From the IMG/VR virus record IMGVR_UViG_3300032116_000004, positions 251,779 through 315,778 of that record: DNA of 64,000 nucleotides; one strand, 5' to 3'. Shown piece after piece: positions 2,155 to 59,477 of this stretch. Within the stretch, counting starts at the first letter, position 1. The number at the start of each line of letters is the position of its first letter. Below the pieces are notes generated by a model. It saw nothing but the letters and a program-made list of their open reading frames with translations, searched no databases and was not told the DNA's origin. The position numbers and the translations under genes are program-made.

Positions 2155-3419
2155 TGCAAGGCCTCCAGTTCGGGTATCACAGACAGCAGATTCTGTCCGC
2201 GGATGGCGTCTAGTTCGTGAGTCTTGCGCCAGAATACCTCCAGTAATTGAGTGTTATCTGACCCCATCATAAAATTGATAGCCGATTCAAAACCCACCGT
2301 GGCACGTTGCAAAGGATCTTGTGTTCTCAACCAATCAAGGTGCTCTTCAAAGCGTATCCTTAGACGTTGTTTGTATTTCATAGGTGCTATGTCTATTCTA
2401 TAGTGTGCTGGATCTTGCAAGATATTGACATTGAGATCCTGCGCACGTATCAGTCCTTGCTCTACCCAAGATTTATGAAAATCAGGTAGATGCCATGCGT
2501 TCATGATACTCAGCGTAGGAGAAATATAGAAATCTACGTTGGGGCAGATATCTATCATCCTACGACGATTATCTTCTACTGTGTTCCAATTGGTACCATT
2601 GCGTATGTATTCAGCACGCAAGTCCATGGCATCCAGGCTGGCTCCTACTGCTACACTCTTAAACTTTTTCCAATAGTCAAACACATATCGATCTTTGAGT
2701 TTGACTTGCGTGAAGTTTGTATTGTAGATCAGGCGCACATCAAATCGTTCTCTGCGTTCTAATTCTTCCAGGATGCGATAGTGCTCATCCATCATCAGAG
2801 GCTCGCCACCTGCAAAATATATCTGCTCTACATAATCAATATGCGGTAACAATTGGTTCCACATATCTTCGGGATCGCGACCTGCAATGTTCAAAGGTCT
2901 ATTGTGTTTGGCCCATTCAGGACCGGCTAACTTGATCTGATCTTGATACCATGAACTGGAAAAGATATGCCCACAACTGCGACAACTGAGATTGCAAAGA
3001 TTACTGAAACGTATATCCCAATAAGTCATCTCAAACGGATTGCTTTCTAATTTCTTGATGTGATGACCGTGATGTTTGTTGGCTGATCTCCGACCTGAAA
3101 AAAATCCCGATTCCTCTTGTTCATAGCATCGACCACAGGCCGGGTTGGGCCGTTCGGCTAACATGTCTTCTCGCAACTGTGTCATGGACGGACCTTGCCA
3201 AATTTCGGCCAAGGTATTCTTTCTGCAATCGCCCACTGGGTATCGCATCTCTGCATGACAGCAAGGATAGGCTTCACCTGTGGGATAAGCATGCAGGTGT
3301 ATCCAAGGATAGATACAGAATGTTTTGCTGTCTTTCAGCAGAAATTGTTCGCGATCGTTGAGATCCGTTGGTCGGACTAAATCTGCGGAATTATATTGAT
3401 ATTGTGTCATACCACTCAC
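2151..3419 (-). CDS. N-terminal twitch-domain radical SAM protein
   Basis: FCIYPW..YPCC..CGRCY; CNLSCRSC; FAGGEPL; SLDA. Confidence 0.93.
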   Translation of the reverse strand: MSGMTQYQYNSADLVRPTDLNDREQFLLKDSKTFCIYPWIHLHAYPTGEAYPCCHAEMRYPVGDCRKNTLAEIWQGPSMTQLREDMLAERPNPACGRCYEQEESGFFSGRRSANKHHGHHIKKLESNPFEMTYWDIRFSNLCNLSCRSCGHIFSSSWYQDQIKLAGPEWAKHNRPLNIAGRDPEDMWNQLLPHIDYVEQIYFAGGEPLMMDEHYRILEELERRERFDVRLIYNTNFTQVKLKDRYVFDYWKKFKSVAVGASLDAMDLRAEYIRNGTNWNTVEDNRRRMIDICPNVDFYISPTLSIMNAWHLPDFHKSWVEQGLIRAQDLNVNILQDPAHYRIDIAPMKYKQRLRIRFEEHLDWLRTQDPLQRATVGFESAINFMMGSDNTQLLEVFWRKTHELDAIRGQNLLSVIPELEALQ

Positions 3420-4749: not shown

Positions 4750-5758
4750 GCATGAACTTTTGGAATTTTACAGTAAATGTTTTCTGTTGGTTAGTATGTA
4801 GTTCTTGGGCGTGCTGTTGGTTATATAAACAGATGTCTCGTGTTTCGATCCAAAATTGGTCTAGATCTTGATCGCATAACCACTGGACTTCTTGTATCAA
4901 TCTGTCCAGTCTCCCCTTACCATCTATTATAGTATCAAACGATTCATCGATCAACGATCCGAATGTTCTAAATCCCATGCGATGTAGGTCTCGATAGAAT
5001 CCCATGTTGGCACAAATAACAAAAGGATGTGCCGCTAATATTGGCTTGTAGGTTTTCTCTGTGCGGAAACTGTGCGGATATTCAAACACAGTTTCACTGA
5101 CTACGCTGAAGTAAGTGTCATTGAACTGTGGTGCATAGATCACGCCATCTAACCATGATGGTTCTGGTTGAATTTCATACCGTGATGGCAAAGATTTTTC
5201 GGATAAATCCATATGCTCAACATAGACTCTGTTGAAATCTCTATGCCCCCATGTATCATAGTTCTCTAGACAAGACCACAATGCTCGATCCAACAATCCA
5301 AAAAATTTCAATTTGGCGATCAAGTATTTCCTATGCGGACGCAGTTTTCGATTGGTAAAAAGAAATTTATAAGGTCGAGTAACCTGTTGGCTTAATACCA
5401 GGTTGGTTTCTTGGCTGCCGATAGTGGCCCGTAAAAAATGCTCGTTGTTGAGATTTTGTATATCCGGATCAGAATCACCGCCTGTTATCCATCTAAGAGA
5501 TCCTCTTTGGAACCATGTATAGTAGAGATGATGTTTGACTATGTGCCACTGAGTGGCCACTGATTCATCTGTTTTTTCTACAGCGATAGTGCTGCCATTT
5601 TCCAAACTCTTGATCACCAACTCTGGTCGCATAACCAGAGTCTTCAAGGATATAGCATAACACCCTTGTCGATCACTTAGATAGTCAACAACGATGTCAT
5701 CTGCTGTATCGAGATACCCAAGTGGCAGTCCAGGCTCAACAATAATATTACCATTCAT
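4739..5758 (-). CDS. putative glycosyltransferase with GT10 (alpha-1,3-fucosyltransferase)-like C-terminal motif
   Basis: YFSVVSET..FRTEKTYKPI..HPFV resembles the GT10 'ENS..YxTEK..P' motif; paralogous to 6111..7166 and 11545..12495. Confidence 0.55.
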   Translation of the reverse strand: MNGNIIVEPGLPLGYLDTADDIVVDYLSDRQGCYAISLKTLVMRPELVIKSLENGSTIAVEKTDESVATQWHIVKHHLYYTWFQRGSLRWITGGDSDPDIQNLNNEHFLRATIGSQETNLVLSQQVTRPYKFLFTNRKLRPHRKYLIAKLKFFGLLDRALWSCLENYDTWGHRDFNRVYVEHMDLSEKSLPSRYEIQPEPSWLDGVIYAPQFNDTYFSVVSETVFEYPHSFRTEKTYKPILAAHPFVICANMGFYRDLHRMGFRTFGSLIDESFDTIIDGKGRLDRLIQEVQWLCDQDLDQFWIETRDICLYNQQHAQELHTNQQKTFTVKFQKFMHAT

Positions 5759-49330: not shown

Positions 49331-51094
49331 ATGATACAAATCAAAGACCTAACCGTTAAAAACTTTATGAGTGTGGGCAATGCCACACAAGCCATCAACT
49401 TTGATCGTCAAGACCTTACATTAGTTCTAGGTGAAAACTTAGATTTAGGCGGCGATGGCAGCCGTAACGGCACAGGTAAGACCACTATAATCAATGCACT
49501 GAGTTATGCGCTGTATGGTCAAGCTCTCACCAATATCCGACGCGACAATCTCATCAACAAAGCCAACAGCAAGAACATGTTGGTCAGTTTAGATTTCAAC
49601 ATCAATGGCCGCGACTACCGCATCGAGCGTGGTCGCAAACCCAACATACTGAAATTCTACGTCAACAACGAAGAACAGGCAGCAGATGACAACTCGCAAG
49701 GCGACAGTCGAGAAACACAAGATGCCATAGAGTCTGCCCTGGGCATGACTCACGACATGTTCCGACATGTGCTGGCGCTGAACACATACACAGAACCGTT
49801 TTTGAGCTTGAAGGCCAATGATCAACGTGTGATCATAGAACAACTGTTGGGTATCACCCTTTTGAGTGAGCGTGCTGAGCGCATCAAAGAACTCAATAGA
49901 GAAACCAAAGATGCCATTGCTCAGGAAGAAATGCGTATCCGAGCTGTGCAAGAAGCCAACAAGCGTATAGAAGAACAGATCGAAAATCTGCGGCGTAGGC
50001 AAACAATGTGGAAGACCAAACATGAGGAAGAGACAGATAAAATCCAAAAGGCCTTGGAAGAACTGCGAAAGATCGACATTGACGCAGAGATCCAAGCGCA
50101 CAAGGACTACAAAATTTGGGATCAGAAGCGCAAAGACATCAACGATCTTGCTGGACAAATATCCCGCACGAAACTTGATGTTGATCGCGAGACGAAAAAC
50201 ATTGGCAAACTTAGCAAAGAGATTGCGACTCTTGAACAGCATACCTGTCATACATGCGGTCAAGCCTTCCACGACTCAAAGCACCAACAGGTACTGGCAA
50301 GCAAGCAGGAGGATTTGGCAACAGCAAGAACGTCTTGCCAGGAGCATACACAAACGCTATCAGAAATGGAGGCTGCCCACACCTCCTTGGGCCAGTTAGG
50401 AAAACCTCCCAAGATGTTCTATGATGCGGAAGAAGATGCCATACAACATCGTGCCAACGTAGACAACCTACAACAACAACTGGACATCAAGGCACAAGAA
50501 ACAGATCCCTACGGTGAACAGATCGAAGAGATGACAGGACAGGCCCTGCAAACAGTGACCTATGACACTCTCAACGAACTCACCCGCTTGCAAGAGCATC
50601 AAGACTTCCTGTTAAAACTCTTGACCAACAAAGACTCATTCATCCGCAAAAAGATTATTGAGCAGAATTTGAGTTATTTGAATGCTCGGTTGACATACTA
50701 TCTTGATCGCATCGGCTTGCCACATTCGGTAATATTCCAAAACGATCTCACTGTGGAAATACAAGAATTGGGACGAGATCTAGACTTTGACAATTTAAGT
50801 CGCGGAGAGCGCAATAGACTGATCTTGTCAATGTCATGGGCCTTCCGTGATGTATGGGAATCATTGTATCATCCCATCAACGTGCTGTTCATCGACGAAC
50901 TGGTAGATTCAGGCATGGACACACAGGGTGTGGAAAATTCGTTGGCCTTGCTGAAGAAGATGAGTCGTGAACGGCACAAGTCAATATGGTTAGTATCGCA
51001 CAGAGACGAACTGGCTGGACGTGTTGAAAACATCCTGCGTGTGGTCAAAGAAAACGGCTTTACGTCATACAACACCGACATTGACATAGCATGA
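49331..51094 (+). CDS. gp46: recombination ATPase subunit, gp46/Rad50/SbcC-like
   Basis: KNFMSVGN, NGTGKTT Walker A, CHTCGQ zinc hook, LSRGE signature, FIDE Walker B, VSH. Confidence 0.95.
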   Translation: MIQIKDLTVKNFMSVGNATQAINFDRQDLTLVLGENLDLGGDGSRNGTGKTTIINALSYALYGQALTNIRRDNLINKANSKNMLVSLDFNINGRDYRIERGRKPNILKFYVNNEEQAADDNSQGDSRETQDAIESALGMTHDMFRHVLALNTYTEPFLSLKANDQRVIIEQLLGITLLSERAERIKELNRETKDAIAQEEMRIRAVQEANKRIEEQIENLRRRQTMWKTKHEEETDKIQKALEELRKIDIDAEIQAHKDYKIWDQKRKDINDLAGQISRTKLDVDRETKNIGKLSKEIATLEQHTCHTCGQAFHDSKHQQVLASKQEDLATARTSCQEHTQTLSEMEAAHTSLGQLGKPPKMFYDAEEDAIQHRANVDNLQQQLDIKAQETDPYGEQIEEMTGQALQTVTYDTLNELTRLQEHQDFLLKLLTNKDSFIRKKIIEQNLSYLNARLTYYLDRIGLPHSVIFQNDLTVEIQELGRDLDFDNLSRGERNRLILSMSWAFRDVWESLYHPINVLFIDELVDSGMDTQGVENSLALLKKMSRERHKSIWLVSHRDELAGRVENILRVVKENGFTSYNTDIDIA

Positions 51095-51714
51095 CATCCC
51101 GGATCATACGAGTCACACCTACCGAACAATACTTCAGCATCAATTGGCAATTGGCTGTGCGTTGCAACTATGATTGCATGTATTGTTCTCCCATGTGGCA
51201 TGATGATCATAGCCAGCATCATGATCTTGACACTATGAAACAGGCTTGGTTAAACATATTTGAAAAGACCAGCAAACAAAATCTACCCTATAAGATCGCA
51301 TTTACCGGTGGAGAACTCACTTCAAACAAACACTTTCTACCGTTTGTCACTTGGTTGCGGAAGGAATATGATCAGCACATATTCAAATTGCTGGCTACCA
51401 CCAATGGCAGCGCCAATCTCAAGTATTATCAGAAAATGTTCCAAGCGTTAGACAACATCGCATTCAGTGTGCATTCGGAACACATCAATGAAGAGAAATT
51501 TTTTGACATGATCATACAACTTAAGAAAAGTATCTCACCTGATAAATTCTTGCAGGTCGCTATCATGGATGAATACTGGAATCAAGATCGTATTCCGTTG
51601 TATATCAATCTGCTAGAACATCACGACATCAGCTACACTGTGAACAAGATAGATTATTCCTATCAGACTCGCACCGTGCCCATATTCAAAGGAAAATTGA
51701 ATCTTGGAATTTGA
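51091..51714 (+). CDS. radical SAM protein, core domain only
   Basis: WQLAVRCNYDCMYC; FTGGE; TTNG; SVHSE. Confidence 0.88.
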   Translation: MTSRIIRVTPTEQYFSINWQLAVRCNYDCMYCSPMWHDDHSQHHDLDTMKQAWLNIFEKTSKQNLPYKIAFTGGELTSNKHFLPFVTWLRKEYDQHIFKLLATTNGSANLKYYQKMFQALDNIAFSVHSEHINEEKFFDMIIQLKKSISPDKFLQVAIMDEYWNQDRIPLYINLLEHHDISYTVNKIDYSYQTRTVPIFKGKLNLGI

Positions 51715-52024: not shown

Positions 52025-52041
52025 TTGATAATTATGTGCTC

Positions 52042-52482
52042 ATGTCATGGCTTTTCGAATCCCGAGAAATCACAGAGTTACCCGAAACGTGTGTCGGGTT
52101 TGTTTATTTGATCACCAATAAACTTACCGGCCGGCAGTATATTGGCAAAAAATTAGCAAAGTTCAAGAAAACAACATATCGAGTAGTCAAACTCAAAAAT
52201 GGCAAAAAGAAACGCAAAAAAATCAGAGGCGCGATAGATTCAGATTGGCAGACATATTATGGCAGTTCTCCGGAGTTATCTCGAGATGTTGAACTGCTAG
52301 GCACCGAAAACTTCTCACGTGAAATACTGTATTACTGCCAATCCAAATCGGAATGCAGTTACATAGAGGCTCGCGAACAATTCTCCCGACGTGTATTAGA
52401 AAGTGATGACTATTACAACGGACACATACAGGTCCGTGTGCATGGCAGTCACATCAAAGGCAAACTAAGCAGTCAAGGCTAG
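52042..52482 (+). CDS. minimal GIY-YIG nuclease (Seg-like catalytic domain) with a basic insert
   Basis: GFVYLITN..QYIGKK..YYGSS..FSREIL..E..YYN; ATG 52042 follows TAATTA-N7. Confidence 0.85.
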   Translation: MSWLFESREITELPETCVGFVYLITNKLTGRQYIGKKLAKFKKTTYRVVKLKNGKKKRKKIRGAIDSDWQTYYGSSPELSRDVELLGTENFSREILYYCQSKSECSYIEAREQFSRRVLESDDYYNGHIQVRVHGSHIKGKLSSQG

Positions 52483-53251: not shown

Positions 53252-53688
53252 GTCATTGGTCCTAGTATTTCAAATCCTTCTATCTCTTTTTTGTAAAGAT
53301 GTGCCTGCTCGAGATAGAGATAATCAAAGCCCCTTGCTTTGTATATGGCACATTCTGTTTTCATGGTTTCAATGCCCAATCTTGATTGCGGATCATGATA
53401 TGTCCATGCAAATTGATCACAGAGAGCATTTTTGTCGTCATACCTTCGTATGAGACTGAATGCTACCATGCGTTCTTGATCAAAATATCCAATGACGTCA
53501 GTCATTGGATCGGTATATCGGCTTCGAAACATGGGTATCACACTACTGAAATGCTTATAGATACAGTAAGTTCTATAGATATTGTCAAGTTCCACCATTT
53601 GCTGTTCGGTAGGTATGAGATATCCCCACTGGGCTGATGCTTGATAATTGGTTTTTGCTAGATTGATACGGGCAAATTGATAGGTCAT
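53248..53688 (-). CDS. GNAT-fold protein resembling the C-terminal domain of aminoacyl-tRNA--protein transferases (ATE1/Bpt)
   Basis: Y..ERMVAFS..YHDPQSRLG..E....KARGFDYLYL..YKKEIEGFEIL. Confidence 0.6.
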   Translation of the reverse strand: MTYQFARINLAKTNYQASAQWGYLIPTEQQMVELDNIYRTYCIYKHFSSVIPMFRSRYTDPMTDVIGYFDQERMVAFSLIRRYDDKNALCDQFAWTYHDPQSRLGIETMKTECAIYKARGFDYLYLEQAHLYKKEIEGFEILGPMT

Positions 53689-54188
53689 TGTCTTGGGTCC
53701 TTTCTATGTTGGAACAGATCTTTTAGGTATTCTTCTGGCCAAGTGTGGTAGAAGCCTTTCGTGGCCATGGACCGGGCCTTGCTGTCAAGATCACTCACAC
53801 TCTGGCACAGTGCCAGGGCATAGGTTCCTTGGTTCATGCACACACCATTTACCCATTCAAGATCTGCAGGATGATCTTCTAGCGCAATGATATCTTGAGG
53901 CAAGAGAAATCCAACATTCACAGAATGAAGATCGCGGGCAAATTGTTCTCTGGGCCATTGCGCGGGATCATATGCATAGATGATGACTTCTTTGTTGCCC
54001 AATCCTGTGGTTGCTAGATCCATGAGATCGGTGTAAACATCAACACCTATGCGTATTTCGTAACTGCGATCCAAGCGTGCTCGGCGTGCATAAGGGCAAG
54101 GTGGCCATCCGCCCAGCGCAGGATTAGGGACTTCAACAAAGGTTTCTATCCATCGTTCGATATCTTGTTTTACTTGCTCTAGTTGCAT
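53685..54188 (-). CDS. DUF1415-like protein
   Basis: WIETFVE..PCPYAR..DHP..Q..L. Confidence 0.45.
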   Translation of the reverse strand: MQLEQVKQDIERWIETFVEVPNPALGGWPPCPYARRARLDRSYEIRIGVDVYTDLMDLATTGLGNKEVIIYAYDPAQWPREQFARDLHSVNVGFLLPQDIIALEDHPADLEWVNGVCMNQGTYALALCQSVSDLDSKARSMATKGFYHTWPEEYLKDLFQHRKDPRQ

Positions 54189-54421
54189 TAGAAGAATGCC
54201 ATTCCGGTTTTTTTAGTGGTCTCGAGATTTTCTTTGATCAATGCACCCACAGATTCTCGCTCACCAAAACTGAGATTGAGTGCTTCTTCATAGGTCAGGC
54301 CTCCTCGCATATACCAACACATCTTGAATATGTCGTCTTTGATTGCTTTGACTTCACGATCATATCCTTCTACTATTTTGGTGATGCGCTCAGGACTCGA
54401 GGTCAGGAGGCGGATACGAAA
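54188..54421 (-). CDS. gp51-like tail/hub assembly chaperone segment, probably expressed by -1 frameshift from the gp26-like gene
   Basis: WYMRGGLTYEEALNLSFGER..IKEN; no convincing start of its own; slippery AAATTTTTTC at the overlap. Confidence 0.7.
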   Translation of the reverse strand, partial: FRIRLLTSSPERITKIVEGYDREVKAIKDDIFKMCWYMRGGLTYEEALNLSFGERESVGALIKENLETTKKTGMAFF

Positions 54422-55251
54422 AAATTTGAGACATCCAGGGTGAATGGTGTTTCGTATTCTTTCTGGCATTCTGGCCCGTTGCATTTGAGTCTCAAGGGTT
54501 TGAGTTCGCTGTGCTCACGCAGTTGTGTGGCATGATCACGTATGGAGTTGAAGATCTCTCTGTCGCAGTTTTGAACAAACTCTTCTATGTGTTCGGGTTC
54601 CACCACTATTTCACCATCGGCACGGATCATGGAGATCACACCGCTCAGGGCAGACATAGTCATGACCGTGAGTTTCTGGAAGGCCTGTGTGAGCAAGCGT
54701 ATCTTTTCTTCTTCGGGCAGATCGGAATTTGGTAGGCTGTCCAGGATTTTCTGATCCTGGAACTGCTTCATGGAATTGGCGTTGGCCTGTTCATAACTCA
54801 GCGGCCGGAAAAATATCTCTACGTCGCCGTGTTTGATAGATTCGCTGTAGTCACCGGCTTTGATGTTGTCCAAGACTTGTCGGAGATCTAGGCCAAATGA
54901 GTTCTCGTTGTTGCAGTGCGGGCAGTTGCTTTCAAAATCCATTTCGTGTCCATAACTGGCGATACGGATAGCGATCAACAGTGTGTCAAGATCCATCTGC
55001 GGAACATGCCATGCGTTCTTGATGGCAGGAATGCAACTCTGGATCACATTGACCAATGCTGATCCATTGAACAATGCATCTGCTGTGCGATAAGTTATTT
55101 CATCGATGGCAGTCATGGGATACACTGGCAGCTCTCGATTTGGGGGCAGTTCGAGCGAACCTTGAGGGTAGTAGTTTCCATCCGACGGCAGGCGGATGTA
55201 AATGGCCGGCTGACGGAAAAATTTGCGTAACGGATTAGAGGTTTCTGGCAT
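54403..55251 (-). CDS. baseplate hub assembly protein, T4 gp26-like
   Basis: Start revised to ATG 55251; NPLRKFFRQP..LPSDG..PMTAIDE..D.LLIAIRIASYG..CPHC..C..C..F..D.SNFF. Confidence 0.85.
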   Translation of the reverse strand: MPETSNPLRKFFRQPAIYIRLPSDGNYYPQGSLELPPNRELPVYPMTAIDEITYRTADALFNGSALVNVIQSCIPAIKNAWHVPQMDLDTLLIAIRIASYGHEMDFESNCPHCNNENSFGLDLRQVLDNIKAGDYSESIKHGDVEIFFRPLSYEQANANSMKQFQDQKILDSLPNSDLPEEEKIRLLTQAFQKLTVMTMSALSGVISMIRADGEIVVEPEHIEEFVQNCDREIFNSIRDHATQLREHSELKPLRLKCNGPECQKEYETPFTLDVSNFFVSAS

Positions 55252-55297: not shown

Positions 55298-57676
55298 ATG
55301 GACGAATCAGAAAAACTAATCAAGATGATGCAAGAGGCCATGGCGGAATTCCGCAAAAGCGGCAGCAACAGCGCCGAAACCATGGCCAAACTCAACAAGG
55401 CCATCAATACCAATACCAAAGCACAAGACGAGAATACCAAAGCACAAGACGAGCATACCCAGCAGACCATGAAAGCTGCCGAGGCCATGGAAAAGTTCAA
55501 AGACACCACTCGAGCAGTGTTGTCTGGGTTGGGATCAGCTGCGCAAGGTGCTAGAGACAATCGCGAAGATTTCCGTTCATTAAAACCAGCAGTGGGTGCC
55601 GCAGGCACTGCGCTCAAAAACATGACCGGTGGACTGGGCACTGCCATAGATGCCCTGGGCCAGGCCGTTTCGGGCATATCGTCATTTGGAATAATGCTGG
55701 GTCCCAAGGGTGCGATTGCCAGCATGATAGGCATGGGCCTTGGTTCAGTGACGTCAGTGATTGGCAAGGCTATCAAGGCACACGGTAAAGATGTAGTAGA
55801 CGCAGGCACTGCTTTCATGAACTTCTCGTTGGACGAAACCCAACGTGTGGTCGGAGCCTTCCAAGAACTCAGCAAGATTGGTGGTGTCACTGGCAACAGT
55901 TTCCAAGGACTGCAACAGGCTGCTCTGGAAACTGGGCTCAGCATGGATTCCTTTGCCCGCGTCATTGCCAAGAACAGCCGAGGTCTGGCCCTTGCAGGTG
56001 GATCGGTCACACAGGGCATGCGAGCAGTGGTGGACATCACCAAGGCCAGCAAAGGATTTGAAGACCAGTTTCTTAAGTTGGGAATTGGCTTTGAAGAACA
56101 GCGAGATCTCACAGCACAGTTCCTGAGTTATCAGCGCACCCAGACAGGAGTCAATCTCCGCGACACTCGCTCACTGGCTGATGCGTCTAAAGAATACATC
56201 TTGCAATTGGATCAACTGGCCAGACTCACAGGCATGAGCCGACAAGAAGTTGCGTCTCGGTTGGAACAACAAAATCGAGAGTTGAAATTTGGCGCTGTGT
56301 TGGCTGATGCTGGTAAACGTGGTAAATCATTTGCAGATGCGATCAGTGGTGCCGCAACAATGTTGGAAGCTAAAGGGTTGAAAACTATGGCCCAAGGTTT
56401 CAAAGACAGCTTTGACAATCTAGGCACTAAAGAAGCACAGTTGTTCTTCCAGGCCACTGGTGGTGCTGGACCAGAACTGGTCAATTTCTTGGAACGCACC
56501 GGCGATCTAGCCACGTTCATGGAACGACTAGGGCAAGCCACAGCCGCAACGTATGAAACCATGGGCGGTACCAAGCAGGAACGCATGGTGGGAGGCCTGG
56601 GCACATACTTTGATCCTGTATACGCCGAAATGCGCCTTGTGACCAATGGCATCCTTGGAACGGCAGAAGCTATAAATGCCGTGGGTAAAGAGCAAAAAGA
56701 TGCCAAGAACAATCAAAGTGACCTCACAAACACAGTGGTTGGCGCACAAAAATCGCTGAGAAATTTTGCAGTGGGCATAGACAGCGTGGTAGTGCAACAG
56801 TTTCCCAAGATGGCAGGTGCTGTGGGAATGTTTACCGATTCACTGGCCTCTGGTGCCAGCGCACTGGACAAAATATTAGGCACAGGTATCACCAGAGGTG
56901 CACCTCCCGGCTCCTACAGTCGCACCCAGGGAGCGGGGCCGCCTGGAACAGCAGGTGGTCCTCCTGGTAAACCACCCATGACAGGATCAGCTGGACTCAT
57001 GGGTGCTGCCGCAAAGAATCTCAATCCTGGCAATCTACGTTTTGCAGGCCAGGACAAAGCCACAGTGGGCACCGGCGGATTTGCCAAATTTGAAACTGTG
57101 GACGATGGTCTGGTAGCATTGGCCCGTCAGTTAGATCTTTACCTGACAGGTAAAAGCCGTAGTGGCAAAAGAGATACCATCTCCAGCATCATTTCGGCTT
57201 ACGCACCGCCCAATGAAAACGACACCAGATTGTATATCGAGCAAATGGCCCGCTTCATGGGCAAAGGTGCTGATGAAGTCCTGCCCAGAGATCCAGCCAC
57301 CATGGCCAAACTCATGGTAGGTATCATTGGCAAGGAAAGCATGGGCGGTCTGGAAAAAGGTTACAACATGCGCGGGGGCATACAGTTTGCTGTGGCCCAG
57401 GCGCTGGGCATAGAACCCAGCAAGGTAGGGAATTTCCAATATGGTGGCATAGCATCTGGTCCAAAGTCGGGATATGCGGCCATGCTACACGGCACAGAAG
57501 CAGTGGTTCCCCTGGCTGGCGGCAGATCCATACCGGTAGAGATGACTGGCATGACTGACACCATGGGCCAACAAGTGACCATGATGGGCGAGCAGTTGAG
57601 CCGATTTGATACCATGATTGGTCTGCTACAGAACAACGTGGACATATCTCGCAAGTTACTGTCAGCAACCCGCTGA
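55298..57676 (+). CDS. tape measure-like protein with a C-terminal lysozyme-like domain
   Basis: Ala/Gly-rich helical body; LARLTGMSR; NLNPGNLRF..GFAKFET..G..AL..YAPPNENDT; C-terminal GGIASGP.SGY.A.LHGTEAVVPL. Confidence 0.75.
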   Translation: MDESEKLIKMMQEAMAEFRKSGSNSAETMAKLNKAINTNTKAQDENTKAQDEHTQQTMKAAEAMEKFKDTTRAVLSGLGSAAQGARDNREDFRSLKPAVGAAGTALKNMTGGLGTAIDALGQAVSGISSFGIMLGPKGAIASMIGMGLGSVTSVIGKAIKAHGKDVVDAGTAFMNFSLDETQRVVGAFQELSKIGGVTGNSFQGLQQAALETGLSMDSFARVIAKNSRGLALAGGSVTQGMRAVVDITKASKGFEDQFLKLGIGFEEQRDLTAQFLSYQRTQTGVNLRDTRSLADASKEYILQLDQLARLTGMSRQEVASRLEQQNRELKFGAVLADAGKRGKSFADAISGAATMLEAKGLKTMAQGFKDSFDNLGTKEAQLFFQATGGAGPELVNFLERTGDLATFMERLGQATAATYETMGGTKQERMVGGLGTYFDPVYAEMRLVTNGILGTAEAINAVGKEQKDAKNNQSDLTNTVVGAQKSLRNFAVGIDSVVVQQFPKMAGAVGMFTDSLASGASALDKILGTGITRGAPPGSYSRTQGAGPPGTAGGPPGKPPMTGSAGLMGAAAKNLNPGNLRFAGQDKATVGTGGFAKFETVDDGLVALARQLDLYLTGKSRSGKRDTISSIISAYAPPNENDTRLYIEQMARFMGKGADEVLPRDPATMAKLMVGIIGKESMGGLEKGYNMRGGIQFAVAQALGIEPSKVGNFQYGGIASGPKSGYAAMLHGTEAVVPLAGGRSIPVEMTGMTDTMGQQVTMMGEQLSRFDTMIGLLQNNVDISRKLLSATR

Positions 57677-57688: not shown

Positions 57689-57695
57689 TAACACT

Positions 57696-59477
57696 ATGTC
57701 ATGGAAAAAATATTTTAAAGTCGCTGATGTTTCAGGACAGTTCAGCCCAATTTCGGGGCAGGTTCCACGCGGTCCCAGTTATGGCACAGGCTACGGTGTA
57801 GACGACAAAGCCCATGCGGAATTTGCCTTCCGCAACTATGCCAGCAGACTGCCAGAGGTCTACACTGGCCATCCCAACAGGATGGAACGCTACAATCAAT
57901 ACGAGAACATGGATGGCGATTCGGAAATCAATGCCTGCCTTGACATCCTAGCCGAATTTTCCACACAGACCTGTGAGGCCAACGACACACCTTTTGAAAT
58001 AGGTTTCACAGAAACACCCACTGAGCACGAAGTAGACATCATCAAGAAACAGCTCCAGCAATGGACCAAACTCAACAAGTTTGACAATCGCATGTTCAAG
58101 ATGTTCCGCAATACTCTGAAGTATGGCGATCAAGTGTTTGTGCGTGATCCTGAAACCTTTGAACTCTACTGGGTGGATATGACCAAAGTGGCCCGTGTGA
58201 TCGTGAACGAAAGCGAAGGCAAGCGTCCTGAACAGTATGTGATCCGAGACATCAATCCCAATTTCCAATCCATGTCAGTGGCGGCCAAGACCACCAATGA
58301 CTACAACACACAGCCACCATCGGGTGGGTATTCAGCACCCTACAACTACACAGCACCCAATGCTCCTAACTCGTCAGGACAGAGTCGATTCCAGCGTTCT
58401 GTGAACGAAACCTGCATCGATGCCAAGCACGTGGTGCATCTCAGCCTGAGCGAAGGTTTGGACTACTATTGGCCATTTGGACAGTCAGTGCTGGAGATGA
58501 TATTCAAGGTATTCAAGCAAAAAGAATTGCTGGAAGATGCTATCCTGATCTATCGCATATCTCGTGCGCCAGAACGCAGGATATTCAAAATTGATGTGGG
58601 CAACATGCCCAGCCATTTGGCCATGCAGTTCGTGGAACGTGTGAAAAATGAAATCCATCAGCGACGTATTCCGTCTAATACAGGTGGTCGTGAAAATATC
58701 ATGGATACCACATACAATCCGCTGTCAATCAACGAAGACTACTTCTTTCCGGTCACAGCCGAAGGTCGTGGCTCGGATGTTACTACCCTGCAAGGCGGAC
58801 AGAATCTAGGCGAGATCGACGACTTAAAATATTTCAACAACAAGATGTGCCGCGGTCTGCGTGTGCCGTCATCATATCTACCCACTGGGCCAGATGATTC
58901 TGATCGCCCTATGAATGACGGGCGTGTGGGCACTGCGCTGATACAGGAATATCGTTTCAATCAATACTGCGAGCGTATGCAACGTCAGATCGTGCAGAAA
59001 CTGGATGACGAGTTCAAGATGTTCCTGCGCTGGAGAGGTTTCAACATTGACTCTGGCCTGTTCAATATCAAGTTTGCACCGCCACAGAATTTTGCCAGTT
59101 ATCGCCAGGCTGAACTGGACACCACACGGATGACAGCGTTCAGCGGGCTAGAACAGTTGCCCTATTTGAGCAAGAGATTCCTGATGAAACGCTATCTTGG
59201 ACTGTCTGAAGAAGAGATTGCAGACAACGAAAAACTATGGAAAGAAGAGCGAGATCAACCCGAACTGAGCACGCAAGGTGGTCAAGATCTGCGTTCAGTA
59301 GGCATCAGCCCTGCTGATATCGAAGCAGACATCACAGCTGGTGAAGAGATCGCAGGTGCCGCAGGTGCACCCGAAGGTGCTGTGGCACCCATGGCTCCAG
59401 GCATGGCCGGTGCTCCTGGCGCTGCCGCAGCTGGCGCAGGACCTGCCGGTGGTGCCGCTCCTGTGCCCACTATCTAA
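57696..59477 (+). CDS. gp20: portal vertex protein, T4 gp20-like
   Basis: LEDAILIYRISRAPERRIFKIDVGNMP; EDYFFP; LGEIDDLKYF..GLRVPSS; start revised to MSWKKYF. Confidence 0.95.
   Translation: MSWKKYFKVADVSGQFSPISGQVPRGPSYGTGYGVDDKAHAEFAFRNYASRLPEVYTGHPNRMERYNQYENMDGDSEINACLDILAEFSTQTCEANDTPFEIGFTETPTEHEVDIIKKQLQQWTKLNKFDNRMFKMFRNTLKYGDQVFVRDPETFELYWVDMTKVARVIVNESEGKRPEQYVIRDINPNFQSMSVAAKTTNDYNTQPPSGGYSAPYNYTAPNAPNSSGQSRFQRSVNETCIDAKHVVHLSLSEGLDYYWPFGQSVLEMIFKVFKQKELLEDAILIYRISRAPERRIFKIDVGNMPSHLAMQFVERVKNEIHQRRIPSNTGGRENIMDTTYNPLSINEDYFFPVTAEGRGSDVTTLQGGQNLGEIDDLKYFNNKMCRGLRVPSSYLPTGPDDSDRPMNDGRVGTALIQEYRFNQYCERMQRQIVQKLDDEFKMFLRWRGFNIDSGLFNIKFAPPQNFASYRQAELDTTRMTAFSGLEQLPYLSKRFLMKRYLGLSEEEIADNEKLWKEERDQPELSTQGGQDLRSVGISPADIEADITAGEEIAGAAGAPEGAVAPMAPGMAGAPGAAAAGAGPAGGAAPVPTI

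Follow-up and report, generated by a model that had tools for sequence, protein, structure and literature searches.

Gene organization around the probable frameshift site

The analysed window is a 64,000-nucleotide stretch of the IMG/VR virus record IMGVR_UViG_3300032116_000004 (positions 251,779 to 315,778), which comes from a 316-kb phage related to T4. On its minus strand it carries a gp26-like gene with a putative slippery site close to the 3' end, beside a divergent gene for a probable tape measure protein and the gene for a T4-type portal protein. The features are as follows.

54403..55251, minus strand: frame-0 ORF of the gp26-like hub assembly protein (short form, 282 aa), with the stop TGA at 54405-54403
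54418..54424, minus strand: slippery heptamer T TTT TTC (X XXY YYZ), encoding Phe277-Phe278 in frame 0
54421..54427, minus strand: overlapping heptamer A AAT TTT, not conserved in relatives and probably not the functional site
54191..54418, minus strand: the -1 frame extension of 76 codons (RIRLLTSSPERI...WYMRGG...ETTKKTGMAFF), joined to residue 278 in the predicted long form of 354 aa
54188..54190, minus strand: TAA stop of the -1 frame, overlapping the ATG of the next gene (TAATG)
55298..57676, plus strand: divergent 792-aa neighbour, a probable tape measure protein with an SLT/lysozyme-like domain (residues about 571-682)
57693..59477, plus strand: T4-type portal protein (gp20; Pfam Portal_T4, E 4e-104), used as the synteny anchor

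The frame-0 gene ends with GTC TCA AAT TTT TTC GTA TCC GCC TCC TGA, and both heptamers are in the X XXY YYZ phase of this ORF. The -1 frame reads FFRIRLLTSSPERITKIVEGYDREVK... and stays open to the TAA at 54190-54188, which gives predicted products of 282 aa and 278+76 = 354 aa, and the predicted junction peptide of the long form is EYETPFTLDVSNFFR. The first ATG after the shift site lies in FKMCWYM. Thus the original prediction, which described the two overlapping heptamers, the open -1 frame without an ATG up to the conserved core and the sizes of the two products, was correct in what it observed. It did not mention an upstream ATG in the -1 frame at 54484, which opens a 98-aa ORF, arises from a conserved Cys codon of frame 0 and is not conserved as a start. 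The run of six T is not an assembly error, since six independent IMG/VR contigs carry it (five at 100% and one at 98% identity), as do many Logan assemblies.

The 282-aa protein matches Pfam PF12322 (T4_baseplate) with E 5e-15 and 56.2 bits against a cut-off of 24.5, and phrog_150 'baseplate hub', while no family of tail assembly chaperones (TAC) was hit in Pfam. Moreover, it shares four invariant Cys and an invariant FF with T4 gp26, and fold hits in BFVD are to baseplate hub (assembly) proteins with E down to 5e-16. The 792-aa neighbour has hits to phrog_873 and phrog_7182, PDB hits to an endolysin and a 'Gp29' chain over residues 572-681, ESM Atlas features nearest to tape measure clusters (0.90-0.91) and a glycine-rich hydrophobic stretch seen by eye in its translation. 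A gene occupies the same position in Phosso, BF, PA5oct (flagged ESI-MS/MS in its record), 121Q and L111 (an uncultured jumbo-phage locus, see below). However, the neighbour matches no T4 gp29 family, and neither the gp29 nor the gp28 family of T4 was found in the genome, so its identification as a tape measure protein, as originally predicted, is plausible but not shown.

Conservation of the heptamer and of the -1 frame

The conservation of the slippery site among homologs, which had been proposed beforehand as a test, was analysed in 89 related loci, from six isolate genera of cultured jumbo phages (Phosso, Atu_ph07, Xoo-sp13, BF, PA5oct and 121Q) and 80 IMG/VR contigs of 50–67% identity. 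A heptamer is in phase in 89 of 89 loci at the same invariant Phe-Phe, with T TTT TTC in 88 and T TTT TTT in one. With the next G it forms the octamer TTTTTTCG, which is invariant in 69 unique relatives. TTT and TTC are fixed in 69 of 69 unique sequences, while other conserved Phe columns vary (48/21, 12/55, 25/44), and among 71 conserved degenerate codon columns these two are the only ones with zero third-position entropy. In contrast, the codon before TTT is AAT, AGT, CAT, CGT or ACT in relatives, so only the second of the two originally described heptamers is conserved.

Furthermore, the variability of the third codon position switches from frame 0 to frame -1 exactly at the heptamer. The mean third-position entropy is highest in frame 0 upstream (1.39 against 0.96 and 0.49) and in frame -1 downstream (1.48 against 0.90 and 0.64), and the Arg codon directly after the heptamer varies only at its -1-frame third base, which is non-synonymous in frame 0. 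The extension is always about 78 codons and aligns without gaps over 78 columns, in which F1, F2, R3, L6, L7, W37, R40, G41, G42, E68 and T69 are invariant. No start codon is conserved: in 45 of 75 unique -1 ORFs the first ATG, GTG or TTG lies at least 8 codons inside the conserved extension or is absent, and the extension of PA5oct has none at all.

A stimulatory element, which is common but not obligatory at such sites, was not found. RNAalifold over several windows gave no consensus structure, the MFE z-scores from shuffling were no different from those of control regions, a candidate long-range GCCUCC/GGAGGC pairing did not covary, and no pseudoknot, hairpin or upstream Shine-Dalgarno-like stimulator was detected. 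The efficiency of the putative shift may therefore be low, although lambda G/GT also works without such an element.

One putatively recoded gene or two genes

Searches of Pfam and PHROG with the extension alone gave nothing usable, and a word-indexed search for in-frame fusions found none. An exhaustive HMM search with the extension profile, however, gave 453 hits at E<=1e-3 in 1.84 billion representatives, and at least 20 cluster representatives of 319–351 aa carry the extension in frame after a gp26-like domain. All 7 such loci with enough contig have a second, short PF12322 gene just upstream, and an eighth, cut contig holds its C-terminal fragment. In these tandem short and long paralogs of uncultured jumbo phages (loci L107-L111, L114 and L115) the long form ends in the same extension domain (E down to 1e-23), the junction is SFRNKIL with a single F, a separate short gene supplies the short form, and the heptamer is relaxed or only a relic in the short copy. 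The synteny in L111 is the same, with the portal gene, a 783-aa neighbour and then the chaperone genes. On the other hand, all 10 genomes with the heptamer have exactly one PF12322 gene, and all ten single-copy genomes checked have the slip site. T4-likes have two genes, and their gp26 FF codons are not slippery (TTC TTT, TTC TTC). tblastn of cyanophages and other isolates with a natural long-form extension reached only Atu_ph07 and Phosso.

An AF2 model of a natural long form is confident (pLDDT 90.6, pTM 0.85), and the extension forms four helices in it. Searches of this model against the PDB gave no meaningful match (Foldseek E > 0.06 and TM < 0.2; VIA-align only generic helical hairpins, Z <= 8.2), and there was no PDB sequence hit. 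A complex prediction of the extension with the tail tube protein scored 0.00, which is not evidence either way.

Relationship to T4 gp26 and gp51 and to lambda G/GT

T4 gp26 and gp51, the hub assembly chaperones (Leiman et al. 2010, PMC3004832), match the same Pfam profile, with the four conserved Cys and the F-F/L motif at the domain end. gp26 is the domain alone, whereas gp51 is the domain (residues 1-201) plus a 48-aa C-terminal tail, so calling the upstream part gp26-like is correct and calling the downstream part gp51-like is right in architecture. The sequence link between the extension and the tail of gp51 is only moderate. hhalign of the extension against gp51 residues 220-253 gave P 9e-5 and a probability of 59%, with a collinear alignment (FFRxRLLxxxPExI against vFKLLxNPDEiF; S..ER..i..lI against P.ER.IaLsLvEK), and the full conceptual product aligned end to end with gp51 at P 1.3e-3. 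A family HMM searched against the T4 proteins gave only weak gp51 signals, an approximate fused product lacking one Phe extended the phrog_150 match only from profile position 234 to 242, and BLASTP of this product against T4 gp51 gave a spurious off-register hit. In T4 the tail is about 25 residues shorter and lacks WYMRGG, and gene 51 is not downstream of gene 26 but divergent from it, with gene 25 following gene 26. Gene 26 of T4 also has an annotated internal-start product, 26'. In a quick tree the T4 pair groups as one clade, which suggests a separate duplication.

The original prediction also held that the gene follows the logic of lambda G/GT, in which a conserved -1 frameshift gives the tail assembly chaperones of long-tailed phages (Levin, Hendrix & Casjens 1993; Xu, Hendrix & Duda 2004, as cited in PMC5009743). 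This holds as an analogy only and not as homology. In both, a -1 slip on a heptamer near the 3' end of a tail-assembly gene would yield a short and a C-terminally extended protein with a common N-terminal domain, no strong stimulatory structure is evident, the gene lies beside a tape-measure-like gene, and two genes are the alternative solution. However, the family and fold differ, the heptamer is U UUU UUC rather than the G GGA AAG of lambda, and the gene is divergent from the tape-measure-like gene instead of lying between the tube and tape measure genes on the same strand. The tube gene lies about 250 kb away in the record, with the sheath and tube genes at about 3.4-5.1 kb in the coordinates of G000 (the genome that carries this gene), against 306 kb for this gene. 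Simultaneous slippage on an X XXY YYZ motif is also the mechanism at IS-element and dnaX-type bacterial sites. H_HH.U_UU.Y heptamers are among the most efficient in E. coli, and U_UU.U_UU.C is one of the motifs used by IS elements (PMC4066793).

Interpretation

Taken as a whole, the original interpretation is partly supported: comparative evidence strongly supports the programmed -1 shift, while the gp51 link, the lambda comparison and the tape measure assignment hold only to the extent given above. We consider it likely, with fairly high confidence, that the single T4_baseplate-family gene of this phage is decoded in two ways. In this view, most ribosomes would read frame 0 and stop at the TGA, giving a 282-aa gp26-type protein, while a fraction would slip back one base on U UUU UUC, with both Phe-tRNAs re-pairing on UUU, and continue for 76 codons to give a 354-aa protein with a four-helix C-terminal domain, which is the architecture of T4 gp51. 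The two forms would act together, in a ratio set by the slip frequency, as non-virion chaperones of hub and tape-measure assembly. The anatomy of the sequence, its conservation, the selection on the -1 frame from the heptamer onward and the either/or pattern of one recoded gene versus two genes are established by the analysis, whereas the production of the long protein by a slip of the ribosome, its frequency and the chaperone role, including absence from virions, are inferred, the last of these from T4 genetics (PMC3004832).

Other explanations are unlikely. The downstream ORF might be a separate small gene of about 76-98 aa, started independently or by termination-reinitiation coupled to gp26, with the T-run merely encoding the conserved Phe-Phe. 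This is favoured by the ATG at 54484, by the annotation of small separate ORFs in databases and GenBank, and by the ATG at extension codon 4 or 5 in Phosso, Atu_ph07 and 121Q, which overlaps the frame-0 stop (ATGA or TAATG) and from which a free extension peptide could also be made. But the absence of a conserved start, the ragged N-termini given by gene callers, the invariant R3, L6 and L7 upstream of the frame-0 stop and, in most loci, of any start, the existence of in-frame fusions in nature and the freezing of the FF codons at synonymous sites only in single-gene lineages speak against it. Transcriptional slippage, in which RNA polymerase would add one U in the U6 run, would give an identical product and remains a minor alternative, as a homopolymer of six T (seven in Xoo-sp13) could slip. 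However, the run is always in the X XXY YYZ phase, and its last base is held at C in 88 of 89 loci although TTT would lengthen the run and favour polymerase slippage. Six bases is short for efficient polymerase slippage, and U UUU UUC is a proven ribosomal shift motif (PMC4066793). A chance overlap, a decaying gene or a sequencing error, although homopolymers are error-prone on some platforms, is contradicted by the identical sequence in independent assemblies and samples, the conservation over six cultured genera and the purifying selection in frame -1.

Frameshifted tail chaperones are regarded as near-universal in long-tailed phages, with T4-type phages as the apparent exception, and our literature searches found no paper linking gp26/gp51 or 'baseplate hub' genes to a frameshift. 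The present finding places a conserved putative -1 shift in the T4_baseplate family of a very large environmental and cultured group of jumbo phages; IMG/VR holds more than 590 relatives of the gp26-like gene. A further possibility, which we regard as about as likely as not, is that the long-puzzling pair gp26 and gp51 of T4 is the two-gene version of a single recoded gene, and that across T4-related myoviruses the same need for a short and a long form of one hub/tape-measure chaperone has been met repeatedly either by a -1 frameshift or by gene duplication, with a fold unrelated to lambda G/GT. If so, the frameshift logic of tail assembly chaperones evolved convergently and T4 is no longer the exception to it. 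The presence of one recoded gene in some lineages and two genes in others is a natural experiment that allows a test of why a fixed ratio of short to long chaperone is needed. In addition, the finding corrects the annotation of many genomes, since the extension is unannotated in PA5oct, truncated in Atu_ph07 and called a separate hypothetical protein elsewhere.

Genetic organization of the locus

The sequence features described by the original prediction were confirmed: the gp26-like ORF on the minus strand ends with GTC TCA AAT TTT TTC GTA TCC GCC TCC TGA, and both A AAT TTT and T TTT TTC in this stretch are in the X XXY YYZ phase. Its interpretation, in which this gene and its -1 extension are the equivalents of lambda G/GT and the divergent neighbour is the tape measure gene, was partly supported, as discussed below. 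The features concerned are as follows.

55251-54403, minus strand: frame-0 ORF from ATG 55251 to TGA 54405-54403, encoding 282 aa
54427-54421, minus strand: A AAT TTT
54424-54418, minus strand: T TTT TTC
54190-54188, minus strand: TAA stop of the -1 frame, which is open from the heptamers to this point
53685-54190, minus strand: next gene, encoding 167 aa (phrog_28122, unknown function)
55298-57676, plus strand: divergent gene encoding 792 aa
49331-51094: ORF of 587 aa on the far side

The 282-aa protein matches Pfam PF12322 (T4_baseplate) at 56 bits against a cut-off of 24.5, and also phrog_150 'baseplate hub'. A slip on T TTT TTC would give residues 1-278 plus 76 more, 354 aa in all, with the junction ...LDVSNFF/RIRLL.... 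The window is the last 64 kb of a 315,778-bp IMG/VR virus record estimated to be 91% complete, and a gene for a T4-type portal is also found nearby, while the 587-aa ORF is taken to be gp46-like by position and synteny with relatives only. The ATG of the 167-aa gene overlaps the TAA of the -1 extension (TAATG), and it is therefore stop-start coupled to the minority frame, not to the frame-0 stop about 215 nt upstream. The nearest cultured relatives are jumbo myoviruses, namely Sinorhizobium phage Phosso, Agrobacterium phage Atu_ph07, the Rak2/121Q group, Serratia BF, PA5oct and Xanthomonas phages.

Conservation of the heptamer and the coding frame behind it

To examine whether the arrangement is more than chance, we collected 89 loci, comprising the window, six isolate genera and IMG/VR contigs of 50-67% identity, from a family with more than 590 members in IMG/VR. 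In 88 of them the invariant Phe-Phe at the end of the domain is written T TTT TTC in phase, and in Xoo-sp13 it is T TTT TTT. In every locus that is not cut off by the contig end, the -1 frame continues for 73-81 codons, and for exactly 78 in the window's own clade. Among 69 unique sequences the octamer TTTTTTCG never varies. Moreover, of 71 alignment columns whose amino acid is at least 95% conserved and degenerate, only two have no synonymous variation, and these are the TTT and the TTC of the heptamer, while three other conserved Phe columns split 48/21, 12/55 and 25/44. The base before the run is always T although the codon varies (AAT, AGT, CAT, CGT, ACT), and thus the A AAT TTT pointed out in the original prediction is incidental.

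The mean per-position entropy upstream follows frame 0, with 0.96, 0.49 and 1.39 for codon positions 1, 2 and 3, whereas downstream it follows frame -1, with 0.90, 0.64 and 1.48, and the change falls at the heptamer. The very next codon is Arg in frame -1 in all of these 69 sequences (CGN), and it varies freely at its third base, which is the second base of the frame-0 codon, where it gives E, A, V or G. The extension aligns without a gap over 78 columns, in which F1, F2, R3, L6, L7, W37, R40, G41, G42, E68 and T69 are invariant. Since R3, L6 and L7 lie upstream of the frame-0 stop, termination-reinitiation cannot explain them. In addition, the Leu codon at extension codon 6 (window 54407-54409, minus strand) is CTC in 68 of 69 unique sequences, even where frame 0 has already ended, which is a constraint at the nucleotide level with no structure found to explain it.

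An independent start of the extension was also considered. The residue after FFR is I, S, T, G, A, L, Q, N, V or R, and only rarely M. In 45 of 75 unique -1 ORFs the first ATG, GTG or TTG lies at least 8 codons inside the conserved extension or is missing, while 26 have an upstream start, mostly the by-product of a conserved frame-0 Cys codon preceded by A. The extension ORF of PA5oct (locus L014, 3334-3558) has no ATG, GTG or TTG at all. Nothing is called there or in PAC2 (L118), where a small ORF on the opposite strand is annotated instead, and in Atu_ph07 RefSeq calls only the last 40 codons of the extension (gp687, L002:4109-4231). Gene callers in the large protein library give this ORF ragged N-termini, starting at profile positions 1, 5, 7, 10, 17, 21, 35 and 39. 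On the other hand, Phosso (L001:3995-4007), Atu_ph07 (L002:3995-4007) and 121Q (L015 near 3310-3330) keep the heptamer but also have an ATG at extension codon 4 or 5 that overlaps the frame-0 stop (ATGA or TAATG), and they may make the extension both fused and free.

Single-gene and two-gene lineages

An exhaustive profile search with the extension found 453 proteins at E<=1e-3. Besides the small ORFs, at least 20 cluster representatives are 319-351 aa and carry the extension in frame behind a gp26-like domain, with the junction ..LDxSxxFRxK(I/L)(L/I)... Eight of them were looked up in their contigs. All seven with enough contig have a second, shorter PF12322 gene immediately upstream, the pairs being 294+346, 276+334, 294+351, 312+319, 281+335, 319+320 and 297+342 aa, and the eighth contig is cut but begins with the C-terminal end of such a gene. 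One of these loci, L111, comes from a 327-kb contig with the synteny of the window, that is, portal, a 783-aa gene, then the short and long genes, with the recombination nuclease genes downstream. Conversely, all ten heptamer-bearing genomes that could be searched whole have exactly one PF12322 gene; these are the window's genome, Phosso, Atu_ph07, BF, PA5oct, 121Q, Xoo-sp13 and three IMG/VR genomes, two of which have terminal repeats. In the short copies of the two-gene lineages the Phe-Phe codons are free, and TTC ATT, TTT ATC, TTC TTT and TTT TTA occur. However, some short paralogs still carry T TTT TTC or T TTT TTT at the Phe-Phe (two-gene loci L107:1680-1704, L109 near 1260-1295 and L114 near 4905-4939), which is possibly a relic of a recoded ancestor. 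Where a T-run survives, the -1 frame closes after one to three codons in L107, L108 and L109 but stays open for at least 13 codons in L114. This either/or pattern is the strongest argument that both a short and a long protein are needed, and that the slip supplies the long one.

Relationship to T4 gp26 and gp51

T4 gp26 (208 aa) and gp51 (249 aa) both match PF12322 over the whole profile, and gp51 has 48 further residues. phrog_150 covers gp51 to position 280 of 282, but covers gp26 and the short form of the window only to about 235. In T4, gene 51 is divergent from gene 26, and gene 25 follows gene 26, which corrects the gene order implied in the original prediction. T4-type gp26 genes end F-[FLMV]-x-x-[LV]-stop with non-slippery codons. 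T4 gene 26 has an annotated internal-start product, 26' (the C-terminal 95 aa; T4 locus L016, 3803-4090), so that T4 also makes more than one protein from this gene, by a different route. Profile-profile alignment showed that the conceptual frameshift products align with a gp51 alignment from end to end (16-345 against 5-253, P 1.3e-3), while the extension alone hits gp51 residues 220-253 (P 9e-5, probability 59%). The motifs are collinear, with FFRxRLLxxxPExI against vFKLLxNPDEiF, and S..ER..i..lIkenle against P.ER.IaLsLvEKD. It is probable, though not proven, that the long form is the equivalent of gp51. A quick maximum-likelihood tree, which has long branches and no root and from which the order of events cannot be read, puts the T4-type gp26 and gp51 together (100*), apart from the jumbo-phage clade that holds both the recoded and the tandem genes. 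This suggests separate duplications.

Putative mechanism and function

U UUU UUC allows both Phe-tRNAs to re-pair perfectly in the -1 frame. In E. coli, H_HH.U_UU.Y heptamers are among the most efficient, and U_UU.U_UU.C is used by IS elements (PMC4066793). No conserved stimulatory hairpin, pseudoknot or Shine-Dalgarno-like element was found at the site, and therefore we expect a low, lambda-like efficiency, although this is only inferred. Transcriptional slippage would give the same protein and cannot be excluded in the absence of RNA reads, but the fixed phase and the fixed C at the end of the run argue for the ribosome. The support for the frameshift is strong, but it comes from sequence comparison and not from experiment. 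The paralogy of gp26 and gp51 is already known, since they share one Pfam family, and so are frameshifted tail chaperones. No paper or annotation describing a frameshift in this family was found, although an earlier description cannot be excluded as most subscription journals lay outside the literature searched; what appears to be new is the frameshift in the family of gp26 and gp51.

For function, the T4 literature lists gp26 and gp51 as hub assembly chaperones, and describes gp51 as essential, absent from the particle and of unknown function (PMC3004832). One GenBank record already calls a gp51 homolog a 'tape measure protein assembly chaperone'. An AF2 model of a natural long form is confident (pLDDT 90.6, pTM 0.85) and shows the extension as four helices, and its predicted fold matches only other phage 'baseplate hub (assembly)' predictions and nothing in the PDB. 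The system therefore works like lambda G/GT in its coding logic, as inferred from sequence, but is not a member of that family. The 792-aa neighbour, proposed originally as the tape measure protein, has several tape-measure-like traits, including a glycine-rich hydrophobic segment seen by eye in its translation, an SLT/lysozyme-like domain at residues about 571-682, language-model neighbours that are mostly tape measure proteins, and a PA5oct counterpart flagged ESI-MS/MS in its GenBank record. However, it matches no T4 gp29 profile. Its only PDB hits are an endolysin (7q47) and the N-terminus of a 1295-aa 'Gp29' chain (9vvp_L). Furthermore, two ORFs on the plus strand (window 51091-51714 and 52036-52482) lie between the gp46-like gene and the chaperone gene, and, by eye only, one has a CxxxCxxC motif (CNYDCMYC) typical of radical SAM enzymes and another has a GIY-YIG-like N-terminus.
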